From positions 30,876,001-30,940,000 of the forward strand of contig OZ241833.1 of assembly GCA_965202585.1 (NCBI GenBank): DNA of 64,000 bases, given 5' to 3'. The stretch is from Thalia democratica (Eukaryota). The position numbers and the translations under genes were made by a program. Below, piece after piece: positions 39,901-61,500 of the stretch. The notes below the pieces were generated by a model. That model saw only the letters and a list, made by a program, of their open reading frames with translations, searched no databases and had not been told where the DNA came from. The first letter of the stretch is position 1; each line of letters begins with the position of its first letter.

Positions 39901-42900
39901 AACTGAAATCTGTGTTTCAAAAAATCAATACTTTAAACATCTGACTTTTAATTTTTTTATTGAATTTTGTTTAAACCTACACAAAACTGCTTTTAGTTTT
40001 TGTTTTATGATAGTTTAAAATTTATCTTAAAATTCATCACGTCAATCCAGAGTTTCAATAATTCTTTGTTTTAAATGTAAATTGCCTCTTAAAATTTCGT
40101 GGTTTTTCCTGCGATTAATAGTTAGTTTTTTATTATATTTACGTTTTTTTTAACAGCCAATTGACGTTTTTCACAAATTTTATTTTTTGTATTGGCGTTA
40201 ATTATTATTTAGCATATCAAAAAATTATTTCTTAAATTTACAGAACAACATTTTTTTTTTAAATACGTTGGCAAGTATCTTTTAATCTTAAGATTTTTAC
40301 TTTTTTATGCTTTCCTTATATTTATAGCAAACGATTTAAACAAATGTATAAAGTGTATTAAACGAAACTAGTTGATTTAATTTGCTTCTTATTTATTTTT
40401 TTTTATTGATTTTAGACTTAATGTGTTCAAATTCAAAAACATTCTAGTCTAAGTTGAAGTCTCTAAACTTAAATTTATATTAAATTTAAATACTATTTTT
40501 TAATACATTTTTACTTAAAACTTTAAAGTAAATATGGGTTGTGACTTAAAGCATTTAAATAAAAATGAAATGCGACTATTTGCAAGCTCTTTTTACCTGA
40601 AACACAAACAATGGTATAAAGGTTTTTACAAAAGATACTTTTACAATTTTCAAAAAACGCACGTCTGTGCGTAATATATCTATTTGATGGGTAGTTATAA
40701 AATTTGCACGAGAGGAAAAAGTTGCACGAGTGCACAAAATTGCGCGAAGATACTTTTGCACGAGGGGACGAAATTGCACGAGAACATTTCTGCACGAAGG
40801 TTCACTTTTGCACGAAAACAATTTTGTACGGAGACATTTTTACACGAGTTCAGTTTTTTTTTTTTAATTCTTTATTAATTTTTTTTTTATCCCTGACCCT
40901 TACCCTCGATCGGTAACTTTTTTTTTATTTTTTTACTATCACTGTTACCCCTTACCCTTACCCTCTATTGGTAGTTTTTTTTTAATTAACTTATTTTTAT
41001 CTATTCTTTTTTGTTTTTAATAAGAGTTTTTATTAGTTATCTTTTTATTTTTACTATCACTTTAACCCATACCCCTTACCCTCGGTCAGTGTTTTTTTTT
41101 TCTTTTAGTTTTTTATTATTTTTTTTCTGTTGTGTTTTACTTTAGTGCAAAAATTACCCTCGTGCAAAAAAGTCTTTGGTTAACATTGGTAAAAATTTTC
41201 ACAAACATAAACTTAACAAACTTACATCAAAACAAGTATAATTATTGATAACAACTTTCAAGCAGTCACAGCAACACCTGATGACCATGGTGATGATCAC
41301 CACCGGAAGATCAGGTCGGTATCCAGGGACGCATCGGACCATTACATGTCCGGAGGTGAGTTATCATGGATTTTTATTTTCGAGCGCAAACATTATAATG
41401 TTAAGGGTTTATAAAACAAAGCCAAAGTAGAAAAGTACCAAAAGTAACAAAGTAAACAAATGAGTCGCATCAGCTAAACAACACTATATGCATAGTTTAA
41501 AAAATATACACAATCCGTGAAACAAATAAATGTTTAAGTGTTATTTTTATAATATTAGTTTTTAGATTACCGATCTGCAAACAAAATTTCTCTTATTTGT
41601 ATATCTTTAAAGTTTTCAAAGGAGGCAAAGCTACAATAAAAAAGCTATAAAGCTGGAAAGAGCTATCGATCGGTGCTAGAAGACTCTTCTGAATTAAAAT
41701 TTTACTGCTTCAAATGAACCTTAAAACTTTTATTCTTTCAGACGCTTGTTCGTGCGACCACCCTTTCTGCGAAGCGGCTCACACCGCAGAGAGGTTCATA
41801 TTCCCCTTCATAATAGAGTTCTGCCTGGTGGCTTCGTCCCTGCTGTTCCTGATCGCCAGGAACATCGACAGGCAGCCTTCGCCGTTCGAACACGTGGTCA
41901 AGCCCTCCTACAGATTCTTCAACTCGATACTGGGTTCGTAATACACTTGTTTGTAGTCTGCTGAACATTAGAAAATTGAAAATTTTTACACGATATTAAG
42001 CTGCGTGCTGTGAGTTAACATCGATCATTTTTATATACAATTTAATACAATTGTTTATTTTTTAGATTTCAAGACTTTTATGCAGTCGTAAACCCTCGAC
42101 AGATAAAACTAACAATCCACGTGACAGGTATATCGTGCGGGTGCGTGGGACTGATAGTGACGACCATCGTAATCAGCTACCTGGCTTGCAGCAGAGCGAC
42201 CAACCATCACCTCAACTACCTGGAAGGTTTCAACGTGCTCATAGTGCACAACTACTACCTGGTGCGTTTGACATTTGGTGTTTTTCTTTGGTAATGGTGG
42301 TGGAAAATTGTTTTAACAAAAAGGTTTTTTGGTAACTTGAAAGAAAGAATGTAGCCTTTAAATTTGTACCTTTTTGTACTGTCGGAAAAGTTTGTTTATT
42401 TTTAGAAGACGATTGAAACTAATTTTTTTAAATGCTGTCGGCGTAGTTCAAAAACCTGATTTAATATACATGTTTTGTCTATAGCGGTTTACATTAAATT
42501 CAAACATGCCAAAAAATACCTACAACCCAAAAAACCAACAGGTCACCTTCCAACTGTCCATGGTCGTGGCCACCGCCATGGGATTCTACTACTTTACCAC
42601 CATACAGCGCCCCCTGGAGTCGCCCATGATGCTGGACGTGGTCCTCCTGTCCGTCTGCATCGTCGGTCCCGTCATCCTGGACACTTTCGCGGTGATTTCG
42701 GTGGTCAGCGGCAGCGACAACAAGGTCGAGGGCTGGTTCGTCACGCTGGTACTGCCCATAGTGGACATCTGCCAGTGCGTCAGTCAGGTAAAAACTGAGA
42801 ATACTCTTGAGTATGGTAATAGATTTTATTAGTTGAAAAGTTCAAACTTTTGATACGTTTAATGTATTTTAGTAACTAATGAAGGAATCAAATGTTCAAT

Positions 42901-45716
42901 GTGAAAATAGTACTTTTGTAAGTAGTTCCTTTTATATTTACGTAAATAACTTTTCTCGGAATTACCAAAATCCGAACTTATTTTTTTTAGTTCACTTTTA
43001 TTGTGTACGGACTGAAACGCGAGCCGAAACCGTCAGATATCGTACAACAGGCAGCAGATAATTTGCAGAAAAAGTAAGAATTGTTTGTGTGCTTTTTAAA
43101 TAAATTTAGCTACATAAGTTCAAATGTACAACAACTAATTTTAAGCTCTTTTTTATCAAAGCTATTATTTTATTCATTTTTTAACTGAAGAGCCCTACGC
43201 AAAATATATTGTCTTGTATTTTTGATTAAATTAGTTTTTAAACACTTATTACCAAATTTAGATTCTAAAATTTATTTTAGCAATGTTTTTTCATTAAAAC
43301 TTATTTTTTGTACCAAAAATAATTCTCAGCGTGGTGAACGAACTGAAAAGACATGACATCATGTGCGTGACGTCATCCACTGAAGTCCTGCATCGTGACG
43401 TCACAATGACGTTCACCCCGTCGGAGAACGACAAGACCGATGACGCCATCATGACTGAACAGTTTGTGGGTCGGTAGTTGTTTGATAAAACCGAATTTAA
43501 AACTCACCCAGCTGCATAAATCTGAATAATAAAGATTTTAACTTTTTTTTAAACCTTTTTTAAACTTTAATTGGATGTTTGAAAATTTTTAAGTAGAATT
43601 TATGTTTCTATTGTGTACCTATTATTTTTCAATAATTTTTTAAAAGATGAAAAGGTACCCTTTAGCAGAGGTTGTTCTTAGCTTTAAGCAAAACTTTCAA
43701 CTGTATGTAAACATCTTCATAGATATAATAAAAACTACTAATCCTAATGGATTTTTTTTTAATTCAGGTAACGACAGCAACCTTTTGGACCTGAGAAGTC
43801 CTTATGGCAATAGATTGCACAGAAAAACTTCGCATTACAGAAGGCATGACAGGTGATAAATTATCAAGATGTTTCATTTACCACCTTTTTAAATCTTATA
43901 CAGCATAATAGCAAGCGTGTCTCAAAAAAAAGTTTAACCAACAAACAAGTTAACTTTCTCAATGAGGTAAGAGAGAGTCTAATATGCATGAAGGGTCACT
44001 TTTGCACGAAAGGACATTTTTTACACGAAGACACTTTTGCACGGTTTAAAAATTTTTGTTCATTTTTTAGTTAAACTTTTTTTTTTACTATAACTATTAC
44101 CCCTAACCCTTATTATCGGTCGGTAACTTTTTCTTTTTTTTTGTTTTTTCATAATCAATTTTAATTATAATTTTTTGTTTAATAAGTTTTAATTTTTCTT
44201 TTTTGTTTAATATATTTTTTTTTAGTTACTGTTACCCCTAACCCTTACCCTTGGTCGGTAAGTTTTTTTTTTTGTAGTTTATTATATATCTATTTTTTCT
44301 CTTTTTTCTACTTTTTTTTGTTAGTTTTAATTATTTATTTTACTATCACTGTCACCTCTAACCCTTACCCTTGGCCGGAAACTTTTTTTTCTTGTTTTTA
44401 CTTTTGTGCAAAAATGACCCTTTGTGCAAAAGTGACCCTCCGTGCAAAAGTGTATTCGTGCAAAAACTTCCCTTCGTGCAAAAGTGTCTCTTCGTGCATA
44501 TTTGACCCTTTGTGCAAAAGTGTCTTCGTGCAATTTTGACCTGTTCCCGTCTCAATGAGCTATTTACTTGCAGTTAGGTAATTTAATTTTACCGTTTTAG
44601 AGTTTTGACCTCTAAACAACAAATTTAAGTATTTTAAAACCGAGTTTTTTTTTCAGGACTTCGGTGGTGTCCGCCATGGTGTCCATCGCCAGCCCCATCG
44701 CCAACATGACGACCACCAACCTGCACAGCAGCCATGGCAACCAGCAGCGCCACCACGCGCCCAAAACCCGGCGGGAGTTGAGGAGGGGCATACGTCACAG
44801 CGTGTGCGCCATGACGACCCAGGACCTCATGTCACGCGACACGTTGGGAGAAATGGTCTGTGACGTCACGCTGAAGAACGGGGGGTTGCCCATCGACACG
44901 CCGCCGACGACCGACGAGGCGGACGACGTCACTCACTCTTCCAACTGTGACGTCACGACGAGTAACAATGGGAAGCACGAGGAGTCGGTGCTGAAGTTTG
45001 TGAAGGAAACGCAGATTGCGAGACCTATGGGCCAGAGAACCAAGTTTGTTTTTATTTAGTACTTTTGATTACATGTTTTAATGATAATAGAAAAGAATTT
45101 AACTAGATCTTTTTAGTTACTTAATGTGTCATCTGAGTCTATTTTTTTTACTTTATATTCAAGTACGTTATTAGAATTTTTTAAACTGTTTCAATCTTTT
45201 TTTTTCTAAATACTTTATATGTTATTTGAAGTTTCTGAAAGTTAGCACTCTATTTTACGCTGCTCACATTTTTTACACAGTATGAAAAGCGATAGTCGTT
45301 AGTCTAAAAACTTAAAAAGCTTAACCTACAAACTTTGCAACTATTTTTGCTAATACATTTAATGATATAAGCACAAAAGTTATACAATTAAAAAAAAATA
45401 AAAGAATAAAAAGTTTAAAGCCGTGAAAACCAATAAACTAAAGAGTAACTAATCCTCAACAGTTTTACAAAAACTTATCAAATCAATTTCAACAATTTTC
45501 AGGCTTCGCAACTTCGTTATGTACCTGTTGGTTAGCAACGCATGCTTGTGGATATTTCAATCGCTGGAGGGCACCGCGTTCGACGTGCACCCCTACCCCA
45601 TGTTCTTCTACGGGGCCGAGGCTTGGACCACCGTTGTCATGGTGTGCCGCCCCCTCACAATTTTCTTCAGGATGCACTCGGCAGGGTGCCTGTTCGAAAT
45701 ATGGTCGTACGCTTGA
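30906..45716 (+). CDS. otop: Otopetrin family proton channel, complete, 790 aa, 14 coding exons
   Basis: Exons 30906-31066, 35595-35745, 36075-36222, 36841-37051, 38763-38893, 41266-41355, 41742-41933, 42128-42261, 42542-42787, 42991-43073, 43330-43469, 43768-43852, 44657-45043, 45503-45716 total 2373 nt, all phases compatible. Otopetrin motifs: RVGLMFLIGTNLSNW (cf. RFGLMH..ATN), FPFIIEFCLVAS (cf. YPFNIEY), LDVVLL, QFTFIVYGLKREP, NACLW, FYG...W, PLTIFFRMHSAGCLFEIW. Exon 1 is the least certain (linked by phase and codon bias only). Confidence 0.92.
31315..31620. repeat. Two oppositely oriented copies of the same dispersed short repeat
   Basis: 31315-31436 (GACAAGACGTTAAAAGGTATCCGTGGTGTG...GTCGTTTAATAAAC) and 31543-31620 (reverse orientation, shorter). 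Confidence 0.7.
32618..33574. mobile_element. Foldback element with about 454-bp inverted arms and 9-bp TSD (Mutator/Foldback-like), in otopetrin intron 1
   Basis: 32618-33071 is the near-perfect reverse complement of 33120-33574, with a 48-bp spacer. Direct repeat AAATTAAAA at 32609-32617 and 33575-33583. Confidence 0.88.
40685..41180. repeat. TTTTGCACGA / TAACCCTTACCC composite repeat family, copy 2
   Basis: About 9 TTGCACGA-type units, three CCCTTACCCT subrepeats, and inverted TCGTGCAAAA units at the right end. Confidence 0.8.
43972..44545. repeat. TTTTGCACGA / TAACCCTTACCC composite repeat family, copy 3 (both inverted end-blocks present)
   Basis: Left TTTTGCACGA block, three CCCTAACCCT(T/A) subrepeats, right block of TCGTGCAAAA/TTGTGCAAAA units ending GTGCAATTTTGACCTGTTCCC. 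Confidence 0.8.
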
Positions 45717-55500: not shown

Positions 55501-58500
55501 AAGCTAAAAATTTTGAAATTATCAATGAATCAAAACTAAATTCAAAATTGGAAGACATAATTAAATAAATTTTTAATCAATTTTCAGACAACAAAAAAAG
55601 AGGCATTCAAGAAAGATGACATGCTTGATGACATCATGGGAGAACTGGGTGGCTCTGATGATGTCATAGAAGAACCTAAAATATACACCCACCACAGGAA
55701 GCCGGTTGCTAGGAAACAGACCCCCTCAACCAGCAGCCAGTGGAGGAAGCCCCAGCTTAAGAAGAGGGTGTCAACAAGCTTAATGAAGCAGAACAGACCT
55801 CAGCAGGTGAAAATGTCTCCTGCCAAGCCACCTACACCTCCACCATTGATCAGGAAACCAATTGATGAACCTGTTGAAATAAATGTAAGTATTGAAAGTT
55901 AAATATAATGTTTATAAATTCTAATAAATTGAAACTGTTTTTACAATATGCTGTTTTTTAAAGTTAAATGAAAAAATATCTAAAAGTTTGATTCTACATG
56001 TTGGCAGAAATTTTTATAGACATTTTGCTTTCAGGAGGAATTTGAAGCAGAAATGATGGAAATGCCAGATGATTTTGACTCTGTTGAGCCCATGGTACAT
56101 GACAACTCTCCACCAGAGAAGAAAATTAAACTGGAAGCTGAGCAACCTGCTGCAAGTGAGTCTCACCATCATGATTTTGATGATGATGATTTCGCCGACA
56201 TTGATTTCGATGATGACATCCTGGAAATTGATGCTCCTGTGCCTAAGAAGGAAATCAAAATTGTTAGTTATTTTTGCAATAATCTTATACTCAAGAAAGT
56301 GTTTTAAACTTACAGAATTTTCTAGAATTTATCAGATATTCATAGATAAGTTTTCATTATCAAGTTTTAACAGCTTATAAATATCGGAGGTAATAAAAAA
56401 GTTATATGATGGAGTGTAATACTAAAAAATAGTTTTAGCCACAAGTCTGCAAATGAAGCTTTAAATTCAATCTGAACTTTTTAGGAGCCCAAACAGCCCA
56501 AACATGAGTGGGATGGAAAGTTGAAGTTTCAAAACGTCCAGCAGCAAACCAATAACATACCAGTTCAGCATGGAAAGTTACCAGTAAAAACTGAGAATGG
56601 TGAACAAGTTAGTTTTGGCATTATAAAATTAACTCGGTCTTTAATAATGTTTTTATAAGTAAGAATTAATAGCTATTGAAAAAAGTAAAAAAAAACTCTT
56701 GTTCTTGTCGTTCTTAAGAAGAATAAAACATAAAATTGTGAGTAATTTGGTAGTATAAGGCAGTTATACTCCACCAGAAAAATAAACTTGATTTCATTGA
56801 CAGGTACTGAAGTTCTTCTGGTTGGACGCCTACGAAGACCAGTACAAGCAGCCTGGCTGCGTCTATCTGTTTGGCAAGGTCCACTGCGACAAGTCTGACA
56901 GGTACCTCAGCTGCACGGTGGTTGTCAAGAACATCGACAGGATGTTGTACCTGCTGCCTAAAGAAAAGGGAGACGGTGAAAGGTATGAGATATCTGAAGT
57001 TTACCAGGAAGTCAATGAGGATATTGAGAGCAAATATGGCCTTAAAGTCAGCTCCAGGGACGATTTCACATACAGGACAAAGGTAAATTCTTTAGAAATA
57101 TAGTTGATAACAATTGACTAGTTAATAAAAATAGATTGGAATTAAAATTATTAATCTACAGATGCCTGAGATGAGAAATGTGTTTGCTGCAAATGATGTG
57201 CCCAGGGACAAGACTCAATACCTGCAGATTTCCTACCCAGCAAAGTATGGTCGTTTCCATGAAAACGTGAGGGGCAAGACTTTCTCCCACGTCTTTGGCA
57301 ACAATTCCTCAGCCCTTGAACTTTTGCTGCTTGAGAGGAAGATTAGGGGACCAAGCTGGCTAACCATCACCAAGTTTGTGTCAAAAGGTGAGTTGTGTGC
57401 TGAATTGATTGCTTGAAAACAAACTTTGGTATAAATAGGACCAAGTTAAAGGTATTTTATAAAACAATTTATATCAGTAACATCTTTTATGTTTCTACAG
57501 CCCATTTAGGATCGTTTATGAGCCACAGCAAGTTTGAGTTGGAAGTGAATTCTCCAAAAAGCGTCACAGTGGACACCAAACTGACTTCAGTCCCGCCCCT
57601 CTCCGTTCTCACCATCAATCTGGTCACGGTTCCCAACCACAACACTAATCAGAACGAGGTTTGTTATGGATTATAAATATTTAAGGAGTGTTTTTTAAAT
57701 AAATGACTGTTGAAATAACCTTAGTGTTTTTATACTAAAAAAAAAAATTGCATACTTAATCAACAGATTGTTGGAATTGCAGGACTGATACACAATGCGT
57801 TTCCAGTGGACAAGCCAGCTCCAAAACCAGCATTCAACAGCACCTTCTTTGGTGAGTTTCACATTTATAAATAACACATTGACAGATAAGCACATAAAAC
57901 AGTTCAGTACAGTGTGAAGCTCAGTGCAGTCTTGTCATTAGTAGTTAGCAGTAGTTAGTTGTAAAACTGAAGTTAAATCAGGATAAAAAGGGGGCAGGAT
58001 AATCAGGCGTAAACATTTGTAGCACCATTTACAGGCGAATCGCATCCTTGTCACTGTTAGTCATTTTCTTGTGCATCGGTTGTCATGGTAACTATTGCAC
58101 AAGTGAATGACCCCCTGTGACAGAGGACCACACTTCACAAAGAAAATCTTGAAGAAGACTTCAACATTGTGTAAGTGATGTTTCTTGTTTAATTAAAATA
58201 AGTAAATAACATAACTATTATATATCTGTTACTATTGGGCTTATAAATGAGCAATTTTCTGCGAGGAAACTCATTGGGCAACCCAAAACATTGAAAATAT
58301 TTTGTATTGCACAATTAGTTTCCCCGTGGACTGTTTGCACAAACTTCTTCAAGGTTTCATCCACAGTTGGGAAAAATTTTACTACTACCTAGGCAGACAA
58401 TTTGAAGTGACGTTCCACCAAGAGGCTCACCTCTCGAGGGGGCTGTGGGTAGGATTTCTCTTGTGCTATAGCTCGAATTTTGGCGGCTATTGCATAAGAG

Positions 58501-61500
58501 ATTCCCGACCACGGCTGCCCGCTTAAAGAGGTGAAACGAAGACGTATGTATTAAATGGCAGTCGGATGGAGGCGGGAGTTCGTGTAAGACATCTTTTGCG
58601 TGTTTTGTGACGTCACAACAGCTGGTGTATTGCACGGAAATTCCGCCCGCATCAGGCTGACCATAAACCCTACCAAGCAGAAAGAAGATGGTTGAAAAAT
58701 GTTGGTTTACAATAAACTCTAGTATTATATTAATATATTTTAACCATCTAGTTACTGTAACTTAATTAGTCAAATTTAATTACTGAATTTTAATAGCTGA
58801 AAAGGTTGAATATTTAGTACATTCTGAGCGGTTGGGCCTGGTGTGGGTTAGTGCAAGGCAACAGGTGACGAAGTTTCACCCAACTTGTATTGCACTAATA
58901 CACGCCAGGGCCCCACTGCATCACCATGACAACACGCCCCAACCACCACCATGGCAGCAAGAAACGCAGAAAACAAGGAGGTCTACATTCGGCAAGAACT
59001 CGCGCAACTACTTACCTCTGTGACGTATTAATACCGATCTCATTGTGTCGTAATTGCACGAGGTCTTGCCCGATTTATTCCTGCCACTGACTCGTCTGTA
59101 AATGGTGCTATTAAAAGTTTTTGAAATTACTAAATGGTTTGAATTTTAGATTTGTTAGATACTATAGAGATTTCAAGTAAGCTTGTTTTTTAGATTTATT
59201 GTCAGAAATATGAATTAATTTGTCCGCAAATTTCAGTGAAGGTTTACCTTAGAATATAGTTTTATCAATTAATTATTGTTTCCGTAAAGACGAAGGTTGG
59301 TTAAAAGCTAGGTTTGTAAGTAAACAGCGCCAGAGTGTATTTTTATGAAACAAATATATAAAGGAGTATTTATGTTTATGTTAGCTGAATTTAAACATTT
59401 TCTGAATAATTTTAGTAAGCTTAATTAAATTGTTGCAAACAGAAATATTTATTGTTTAGACACAAATAAAAGATAAGTTAACAGAAAAAGTTGAATATTT
59501 CCAGTTTGATGGTTAAAAACTTGAACATGATTTAAAAAAATATCAATTTTCAGATAGTTAGTCTGATATGAAAATAAGTTATACATAGTAGTAAGGAGAA
59601 TATAGATTGCTAAGAATAGAAAATAACATTGTAAAAAATAAAATTAATAATACATGGTGTAAATGCATACACAACTTATAAAACTGTATACAAATGTAGA
59701 TAGGATTTTTTTCTTATAGACAGCATCAGACAGCATATTTTATGAAAACTTTATGCAAGTGAAACAGTTAAAGTTTTGTTTAAAATGTTTTAATATGTAA
59801 AAGTTTTGAGTTTCATACAAGCACAAGTATTGATAATCAAAATATTTTGTACCATCATTTTTTGTTTAAACTTATTGTAAGTTATATGTTGCATGTATAA
59901 TTGAGTTGTGAGCTTAATAATTTACAACTATTCTAAAACAAATTTTAAAATTAAGGTTAACCAAGATTTTACTTAATATTTAATGTTGCTTTAATGTGAT
60001 CGTGTGATTGTTGGTTGCGTGATAAATTTCTGAAAACTTTGTAATTTTCTCAGCGCTGACCAAACCAAAGAACTGTCTGATACCGTTCGACTTCAAAGAC
60101 GAGGCCAAGAAAAAGAACTATGACGTATCAATATCGATGAATGAAAAAGATCTGCTCAAGTTTTTCCTGGCCAAGCTCGCACAGGTTTGCTTGTTAAACA
60201 TTTATATATTTTTACTATCAATATTGTATTTGTATTAAAGAGAATAACAAAAATAGCTGCTTCATGAACAGTTATACTGGAATATTCAGTTTTTTAAATC
60301 TGAATATAATTGTTTGTTACACAATTAAGACAAGATAAGTATTGGTTAAAATCACTTAGTACTATTACAGTTTCATATAATAAAATGGTTTGTTTACGTA
60401 TTATACAAGGTTACTATGGAATAAAATGTTAATATTTTGTCTTCAGTATAAGTATGCTAATGACACAAAGTTAGAAAAAATGTTCATTTGTTTTTACTTA
60501 AACTTTAAAGGTGGTTAAAACTAATTGCAAAAATCTGGAAATTAGTTAAAATGTGTTTTTTTCTGCACCATTAGTCAAGTTTGTAAAATGCTAATTGTCA
60601 ATCTTTTCATCAAAACAAAAATAGTACTACCTAAAATGCACAAAAAATTTTTTTAGAAAACAGTAGAACAGTAAATAACTTATTATATATTTTAATAAAC
60701 AAAATTAAATTTAAGATAAATGGTGCTTAAAAAGCTTTTTTATCACTGTAAAAAGATTTTCTATTATTAAAAAAAAAAAACGATATTTTAGTGAAACTTT
60801 TTTTTCATTAAATTGAAACAAATGTTTAAAATTTTTTGAATTTTTTTTTCACAGATAGACCCGGATGTGATTATGGGTCACGATCTGGTGGACTTTACAT
60901 TGGACGTCCTTTTAACCAGAATGTCAAAGCACAACGTGGACAACTGGTCCAGATTGGGCAGGCTCAAAAGAAAGTTCATGCCCAAGTTGAAGGTTTGTAA
61001 TTTGTTAACTTTTCTGATGCTGGTATTTTCCGCACGTAACCGAAGTACTTATAAAAATCTCCAGCTTTTTACAATGGAACTAGAACAGATTGGTGTGAAA
61101 ATAGTGGCACCGCTCTGTTTTAGTTCCACTGTAAAACACTGAAAAATCTGCAAAAGGTACTTTCGCGCTCTCTGTTTGAGGAAACTGAAAAGGCGTTTGA
61201 ATCTGTATGTAAGTTTGTTAGACTAAACATAATTTGAATATGAATATCATTATTTTATTTGATCTTTAAAAAAATAAAATTCTAAAAATAGAAAAGTGCA
61301 CATACTTTTTGTTATAAATATGGCTGATGATGAGATTTATAGTAAATTATGACAAACTTTTTATTTGAATTTACTGAAAAAGTTTACAACTCCGCTATTA
61401 ACATATTGGAATTTTATTGGTGAAACTGTAAGTTCAGTAGCAGAAAGGGGAGTTACTATTTAAAAACCAATAAAATCTAGTTGTTGTGAAGGATTACAAA

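Follow-up and report, generated by a model that had tools for sequence, protein, structure and literature searches.

A candidate cluster of six miR-92-seed microRNA hairpins in a POLA1 intron of a tunicate

Introduction

What is encoded by a guanine-cytosine (GC)-enriched, 1-kb island, inside an intron of the POLA1 gene, that carries the seed motif of one microRNA (miRNA) family six times on one strand? The question arises in a 64,000-nt stretch of the Thalia democratica assembly GCA_965202585.1 (contig OZ241833.1, forward-strand positions 30,876,001 to 30,940,000), hereafter the window, whose first letter is position 1 of the coordinates used below unless another sequence is named. An earlier note, made from the letters of the window alone, had proposed that the intron holds six hairpins of the miR-92 family. 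The miR-92 seed family (miR-25, miR-32, miR-92, miR-363 and miR-367, fly miR-92 and miR-310-313, and worm miR-235) is recognized by AUUGCAC at nt 2-8 of a mature strand that derives from the 3p arm. We find it highly probable that the island is a genuine, tandemly duplicated cluster of six miRNA hairpins with this seed, lying in sense orientation in a POLA1 intron of a tunicate.

Six hairpins in a spliced POLA1 intron

A pattern search of the window retrieves all six of the plus-strand (T/A)ATTGCA(C/T) sites, or WATTGCAY, that the earlier note had listed. The motif matches 15 times in the window, compared to 16.1 matches expected by chance; six of the 15 lie within 1 kb, all on the plus strand, and this crowding is not a chance effect. 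Each of the six sites opens the 3' arm of its own hairpin when folded, with loops spanning 12-40 nt, minimum free energies (MFEs) of -26 to -54 kcal/mol and z-scores of -3.3 to -6.4; at 0-1 of 200 dinucleotide shuffles per hairpin folding as well, all six beat the shuffled controls that the earlier note had suggested as a check. The features concerned are as follows.

57765..57851, + strand: POLA1 exon upstream of the host intron (spliced RNA contigs; tblastn to tunicate POLA1 proteins)
57852..60053, + strand: POLA1 host intron, 2202 nt, GT..AG (755-nt RNA contig)
58040..59080, + strand: GC-enriched, single-copy island with the hairpins (GC content; genome search)
58048..58123, + strand: hairpin 1; predicted 3p 58093-58114 (UAUUGCACAAGUGAAUGACCCC), predicted 5p 58059-58080; MFE -33.6, z -4.9, 16/22 nt paired
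58258..58330, + strand: hairpin 2; predicted 3p 58305-58326 (UAUUGCACAAUUAGUUUCCCCG), predicted 5p 58264-58285; MFE -26.3, z -3.3, 17/22 nt paired
58435..58521, + strand: hairpin 3; predicted 3p 58488-58509 (UAUUGCAUAAGAGAUUCCCGAC), predicted 5p 58450-58472; MFE -47.6, z -5.1, 17/22 nt paired; 12 kcal/mol better on the + than on the - strand
58560..58658, + strand: hairpin 4; predicted 3p 58628-58649 (UAUUGCACGGAAAUUCCGCCCG), predicted 5p 58571-58591; MFE -44.3, z -3.8, 17/22 nt paired; in the strand comparison, + -51.0 versus - -32.5 kcal/mol, with five G:U pairs
58828..58919, + strand: hairpin 5; predicted 3p 58888-58909 (UAUUGCACUAAUACACGCCAGG), predicted 5p 58839-58860; MFE -53.7, z -6.4, 19/22 nt paired
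58989..59073, + strand: hairpin 6; predicted 3p 59052-59073 (AAUUGCACGAGGUCUUGCCCGA), predicted 5p 58991-59011; MFE -27.3, z -3.7, 16/22 nt paired; weakest lower stem among the six
60054..60181, + strand: POLA1 exon downstream of the host intron (spliced RNA contigs, next joint 60181/60852; tblastn)

As a negative control, all 15 sites were put through the same uniform test, in which each was folded together with 62 nt upstream and 34 nt downstream and the number of its 22 nt paired to the upstream arm was counted. Within the cluster every site has 16-19 of 22 nt paired (z -2.5 to -7.8); the nine sites elsewhere in the window fail to form a comparable hairpin (z -2.0 to +1.6). A sliding fold of the whole intron, blind to the motif, returns the same six hairpins and one AT-rich extra. 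AUUGCAC is exact in five of the six; hairpin 3 has AUUGCAU, and so matches at nt 2-7 only. As predicted from the fold, then, the seed sits on the 3p arm of a stable, pre-miRNA-like hairpin, as in the seed family. Hairpins 3, 4 and 5 fold better on the plus strand by 9-18 kcal/mol because of G:U pairs. Microprocessor motifs (CNNC, UG and UGU) occur in some of the hairpins and are uninformative.

The host gene is POLA1. The plus-strand flanking exons match Pfam DNA_pol_alpha_N and DNA_pol_B_exo1, and exon alignments to POLA1 proteins run along the whole gene, ~40 kb. A 755-nt contig from a transcriptome-like run of organism A (X7) joins five exons, its last joint (57850/60053) skipping exactly 2202 nt, GT..AG; a seawater run (X5) is likewise joined across the host intron, at 57851/60056, read as GT..CG, and the marine metatranscriptomes X4 and X6 show neighboring splice joints. 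These spliced contigs establish that the intron 57852-60053 is real, as the earlier note had it, and that POLA1 is expressed. Since the hairpin seeds and POLA1 are all on the plus strand, the cluster lies in sense orientation in a spliced intron of an expressed gene, which bears out the earlier placement of pre-miRNA-like hairpins on the host strand. We tried and rejected a mirtron origin: no hairpin end coincides with a splice site, the nearest being at a distance of 196 nt on the 5' side of the intron and 980 nt on the 3' side. Another POLA1 exon (Clavelina residues 749-786) was observed at L011:6248-6361, ~6.2 kb past the end of the window.

The island is indeed GC-rich relative to its surroundings, at 41.7% GC versus 24.8% in the remaining intron, and has one match only in the 801.8-Mb genome. 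Being single copy, it is not the multi-copy transposon that the earlier note had named as the finding that would undo its proposal.

Co-variation and constraint on the arms

Over nt 9-22 the 3' arm tails of the six hairpins have only 3-8 of 14 positions in common in pairwise comparison, and to this extent the arms are almost unrelated, as first described. That description does not hold throughout: a CCC(G) block, which recalls the GUCCCGGCC tail of canonical miR-92, recurs near nt 17-21 in the alignment. The arms are therefore not wholly unrelated, which argues for common descent.

Co-variation was examined in a set of 12 hairpins: the six of the window, four from Clavelina lepadiformis, and two from a second miR-92 locus of the same genome (both described below). 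MAFFT followed by RNAalifold gave no consensus structure for the twelve, because their 12-40-nt loops misregister the 5' arms. We replaced this approach by two alignment-free tests, a cross-pairing permutation and a pair table anchored on the 3' arm. Duplex energy averages -21.1 kcal/mol when each 3' arm is paired with its own upstream arm, compared to -12.4 ± 3.7 kcal/mol with the other eleven arms; the own arm is the top partner in 9 of 12 hairpins, and 0 of 100,000 permutations reach the observed energy sum. In the 3'-arm register, seed positions 3-8 show essentially a single pair type, while positions 9-19 are paired in 10-11 of the 12 hairpins through 3-6 pair types each (nt 12, paired in 6 of 12, is the exception); position 2 is unpaired in most of the twelve. 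Co-variation of the 5' arms with their 3' arms, claimed earlier from the window alone, is supported by these tests.

Population variation over the island was taken from three DNA runs representing two organisms, all figures referring to the single nucleotide polymorphisms (SNPs) listed for 58040-59080. The six predicted 3p arms (132 nt) contain none of these 29 SNPs (P 0.02), and both arms combined (263 nt) contain one (P 0.002), at an unpaired bulge; 19 of those listed are in spacers. As a sign of constraint on the arms, this depletion is suggestive only. Several SNPs bunch at 58934-58972, unlike the SNP-free mature arms, and both organism-A runs show a 9-bp deletion polymorphism at 58957, in the spacer that separates hairpin 5 from hairpin 6.

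The extra hairpin of the intron-wide scan lies between members 4 and 5.

58677..58758, + strand: possible seventh hairpin, AT-rich (intron-wide fold scan); MFE -23.6, z -3.8

Its 3' arm begins UAUUAAUA, not UAUUGCAC. Its loop carries indel polymorphisms and the stem of its 3' arm a SNP, at 58743, so it seems to be under less constraint, and it may be a decayed or diverging paralog. Hairpin 6 and this seedless seventh hairpin are the weakest members of the cluster.

Counterparts in other tunicates

In the POLA1 gene of Clavelina lepadiformis (L006), ATTGCAC occurs four times on the sense strand at intervals of ~125 nt, and each occurrence opens a hairpin's 3' arm (z -5.1, -4.6, -3.4 and -1.5). 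The exons flanking the window intron align to residues ~598 and ~596 of Clavelina POLA1, and the Clavelina host intron lies at that same position; it is ~617 nt long, and the four hairpins occupy much of its length. The two Clavelina assemblies are identical over the cluster and so give no variation signal. By the objective criterion used across species, a site counted when it had the motif, pairing at 15 or more of 22 nt, and ΔG ≤ -22. The outcome was as follows.

Window, both strands: exactly six sites pass
Clavelina POLA1, both assemblies: exactly four sites pass
Amphioxus POLA1 (25 kb): zero pass
Ptychodera POLA1 (47 kb): zero pass
Patiria POLA1 (48 kb): zero pass

In Ciona intestinalis, four hairpins (mir-367, mir-2206-3, mir-2206-1 and mir-2206-2, in that order) lie within 370 nt on the minus strand of JGI v1 Scaffold_223:143,804-144,212, all with UAUUGCAC on the dominant 3p arm, for which 27,714, 851, 1,525 and 391 reads, respectively, were reported; C. 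savignyi has conserved 3p arms for this cluster (Hendrix, Levine & Shi 2010, PMC2884542 and its supplement). RT-PCR (reverse transcription-polymerase chain reaction)-validated miR-367 is also on record from Halocynthia (S99:176620-176695). The Clavelina members C1, C2 and C4 find their best tail matches in Ciona mir-367, mir-2206-3 and mir-2206-2, collinearly (P 0.013 for C1 with mir-367 and 0.001 for C4 with mir-2206-2).

All three clusters are thus made of tandem hairpins with AUUGCAC on the 3p arm and divergent tails, six in the window and four each in Clavelina and Ciona, and the window cluster resembles that of Ciona further in having UAUUGCAC at the 5' end of what is here the predicted dominant 3p. 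The first member in Ciona and Clavelina has a GAAUG core that is also found in hairpin 1 of the window (W1), and W1 equals Ciona mir-367 at 14 of 20 ungapped positions, both being first in their cluster, as in Clavelina; hairpin 1 is possibly the counterpart of tunicate 'miR-367'. Unlike Ciona, with four members ~100 nt apart, the window has six, perhaps seven, at a spacing of 140-260 nt; and unlike the Clavelina-Ciona pairing, its tails have no clear one-to-one match to those of Ciona. We take the window cluster, on intron position and seed, to be the positional ortholog of the Clavelina four-hairpin cluster, and probably also of Ciona mir-367/mir-2206. The earlier description of the cluster as lineage-specific therefore applies to member number and tails, which are species-specific, and not to the cluster as such, given four members in the same Clavelina intron that match the Ciona cluster in order.

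The same genome carries canonical miR-92 (UAUUGCACUUGUCCCGGCCUUC) 13.3 Mb away on the same chromosome (C9:44247371; L002:1440-1836 = C9:44247311-44247707), scoring 30.1 bits with Rfam mir-92_2 and 24.4 bits with mir-92. Its partner, hairpin-like and with UAUUGCACUUCCCUAGACUAGU, follows ~310 nt downstream. The tails of this pair match those of Ciona mir-92-1 and mir-92-2 at P 0.0005 each, and the two Ciona genes lie 300 nt apart (PMC2884542); as judged from sequence and spacing, the pair are clear counterparts of mir-92-1 and mir-92-2. Because the canonical pair has its own locus, the six intronic members are additional to it, and not the sole miR-92 genes of the genome. They are like canonical miR-92 (RF00464; Ciona mir-92-1/-2) in the 3p seed, the CCC(G) remnant of the GUCCCGGCC tail and the mostly unpaired position 2, and unlike it in falling under Rfam thresholds.

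Lineage and habitat of the window species

The six best-scoring POLA1 proteins against the window exons are all from tunicates, and a maximum-likelihood POLA1 tree (1412 columns) places the window species inside the tunicates (100/100), on a long branch grouped in a clade with Clavelina, Phallusia and Ciona (100/99) and apart from Styela. The placement rests on this tree and not on marker miRNAs. A miR-126 hairpin (L005:1462-1528, C1:62500888-62500954; mature UCGUACCGUGAGUAAUUAAGC; Rfam 40.9 bits, E 1e-6) fits a genome of the tunicate or vertebrate line; miR-71, miR-2 and canonical let-7 were not found in the genome with the marker sequences used, and these markers serve as leads only.

Spliced POLA1 transcripts in the marine and seawater metatranscriptomes X4, X5 and X6 are 90-99% identical to the window (56800-61000). 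The species or close relatives are therefore abundant in plankton samples, which suggests a planktonic habit. The same exon open reading frame is also present at 83% identity in a 547-bp metagenome contig (L004) of the European Nucleotide Archive.

Interpretation and alternatives

If the island is a genuine miRNA cluster, it would have arisen by tandem duplication of one miR-92-type hairpin. The POLA1 pre-mRNA, or an overlapping transcript, would carry the six hairpins, each of which would be cropped by Drosha/DGCR8 and then diced by Dicer; the 3p strands, all starting (U/A)AUUGCA(C/U), would load into Argonaute. Seed-based targets would be common to the six, and the different tails may add supplementary pairing. 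On this model, cropping is probably from the POLA1 pre-mRNA and probably yields six 3p miRNAs with a common seed and different tails. The co-transcription with POLA1 and the role of amplifier that the earlier note proposed are inferences, like processing, arm choice and targets.

Several observations weigh against a set of six functional genes. At gathering thresholds Rfam has zero matches in the window, and a sensitive scan adds only sub-threshold miRNA-like ones; none of the six reaches gathering-level homology to the Rfam models mir-92 (RF00464), mir-92_2 or ciona-mir-92, the best being a weak match of ciona-mir-92 to hairpin 5 (19.7 bits, E 0.65, versus 56 bits needed). The canonical copy in the same genome scores just 24-30 bits, however, which shows these mir-92 models to be strict for tunicates. 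For hairpins 2 and 6 the minus strand gives the better fold, the lower stem of hairpin 6 is poor, and hairpin 3 has U instead of C at seed position 8. The tails of the window members match those of Clavelina and Ciona weakly (best W2 with C3, P 0.0125 uncorrected), POLA1 hosting of the Ciona cluster would follow by analogy with Clavelina, and the SNP depletion concerns part of the variation, namely the SNPs listed. None of the RNA runs searched for the island contains it, the transcriptome and metatranscriptome contigs holding exons only and leaving the intron uncovered; this is expected of long-RNA libraries and uninformative on mature miRNAs.

The hairpins might also be true miRNA genes with their own intronic promoter or an overlapping non-coding transcript, so that their output would be uncoupled from POLA1 transcription. 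The GC-enriched island could contain regulatory sequence, the canonical pair elsewhere implies that the family can do without POLA1, and no RNA contig joins the hairpins to POLA1 exons; yet the hairpins are sense-oriented in a short, efficiently spliced intron, and the Clavelina intron, largely filled by its hairpins, leaves little room for a promoter. We judge a separate transcription unit unlikely. It is very unlikely, in our estimation, that processing to functional miRNAs has ceased in some or all members, leaving decaying relics or structured elements of the intron: the 3p arms hold none of the SNPs listed as opposed to 19 in spacers, pairing is preserved through co-variation, position is conserved in Clavelina, and the Ciona counterparts are abundantly sequenced. 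What speaks for decay is the state of hairpins 3 and 6, the seedless and polymorphic seventh hairpin, and the failure of the Rfam models to recognize the hairpins. A transposon, a DNA-level tandem repeat with ATTGCAC units, or chance folds would account for the recurrence of the 8-mer and for nothing further, and we give such an origin practically no weight. The units have just the seed and the CCC(G) block in common, shuffled sequences almost never fold as well, and transposon and chance origins are excluded by the single copy of the island, the control sites that fail to fold, and the orthologous cluster in Clavelina. Duplicated miR-92-seed miRNA hairpins, sense-oriented in the POLA1 intron, thus account best for the island.

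Relation to known clusters

Clusters of miR-92-seed miRNAs with diverged tails are well known, as in fly miR-310-313, Ciona mir-367/mir-2206 and the miR-17~92 paralogs; in the window, a miR-92-family cluster already known from tunicates takes a species-specific form with six members. It is not a new type of element and reveals no new kind of RNA or mechanism. The vertebrate miR-106b~25 cluster, of which miR-25 is a miR-92-seed member, lies in sense orientation in an intron of MCM7; there, as here, a miR-92-seed miRNA is sense-oriented in an intron of a DNA-replication gene. The host is another one, however, and the vertebrate cluster mixes miR-17-type seeds with the miR-25 seed; a link by ancestry between it and the tunicate arrangement is without support. 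Locally duplicated miR-92-seed hairpins with diverged tails are also seen in Drosophila miR-310~313, and fly miR-92a and miR-92b lie in jigr1, miR-92a being intronic and co-expressed with its host (PMC4238352, PMC4441384). Fly miR-92a represses its own host; in the tunicate, by contrast, the 10 kb that include the POLA1 3' untranslated region (UTR) have no GTGCAAT seed match, which makes canonical 3'-UTR feedback on POLA1 unlikely. A copy of insect miR-279 lies in an intron of POLA2, where it served its authors as a genomic anchor (Mohammed, Siepel & Lai 2014, PMC4238352); this too is a miRNA hosted by the gene of a polymerase-alpha/primase subunit, although subunit, miRNA family and phylum all differ.

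A literature search with the six mature sequences returned no paper, and one on POLA1 with miR-92 and on Ciona miRBase names returned nothing relevant. No description of conserved POLA1 hosting between two divergent tunicates was found in the searchable literature, genome browsers and MirGeneDB lying outside the search. POLA1 hosting and its conservation are thus the modestly new point, which may already be visible in those resources. Its closest published analogs are insect POLA2 with miR-279 and vertebrate MCM7 with miR-25.

For a tunicate genome lacking annotation, the analysis supplies a well-supported miRNA entry. It shows that one POLA1 intron has hosted a cluster of this family at least from the last ancestor that the window species has in common with Clavelina; the three POLA1 genes examined from deuterostomes outside the tunicates lack the cluster. 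Such a fixed genomic anchor can be used to trace retention of the seed while tails and copy number drift, and it suggests a connection, open to test, between miR-92 output and a replication gene. We advance more speculatively, and with considerable doubt, the idea that POLA1 hosting is an old, selectively maintained tunicate trait by which miR-92-family output is coupled to the transcription of replication machinery in S phase, independent of and parallel to vertebrate MCM7/miR-25. If so, the parallel would be a case of convergence, with one seed family wired to replication genes, and the six or seven members in a long-branch, apparently planktonic species would represent an adaptation of dosage or target range.

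Other observations in the window

The stretches 40600-40900 and 44100-44540 of the window are rich in a short repeated unit with TTGCACGA / TGCACAA, and have long, spurious open frames in several phases. Two of the AATTGCAC matches outside the cluster fall within them, on opposite strands (40772, plus; 44528, minus). The two stretches may be inverted repeat copies flanking ~3.5 kb.

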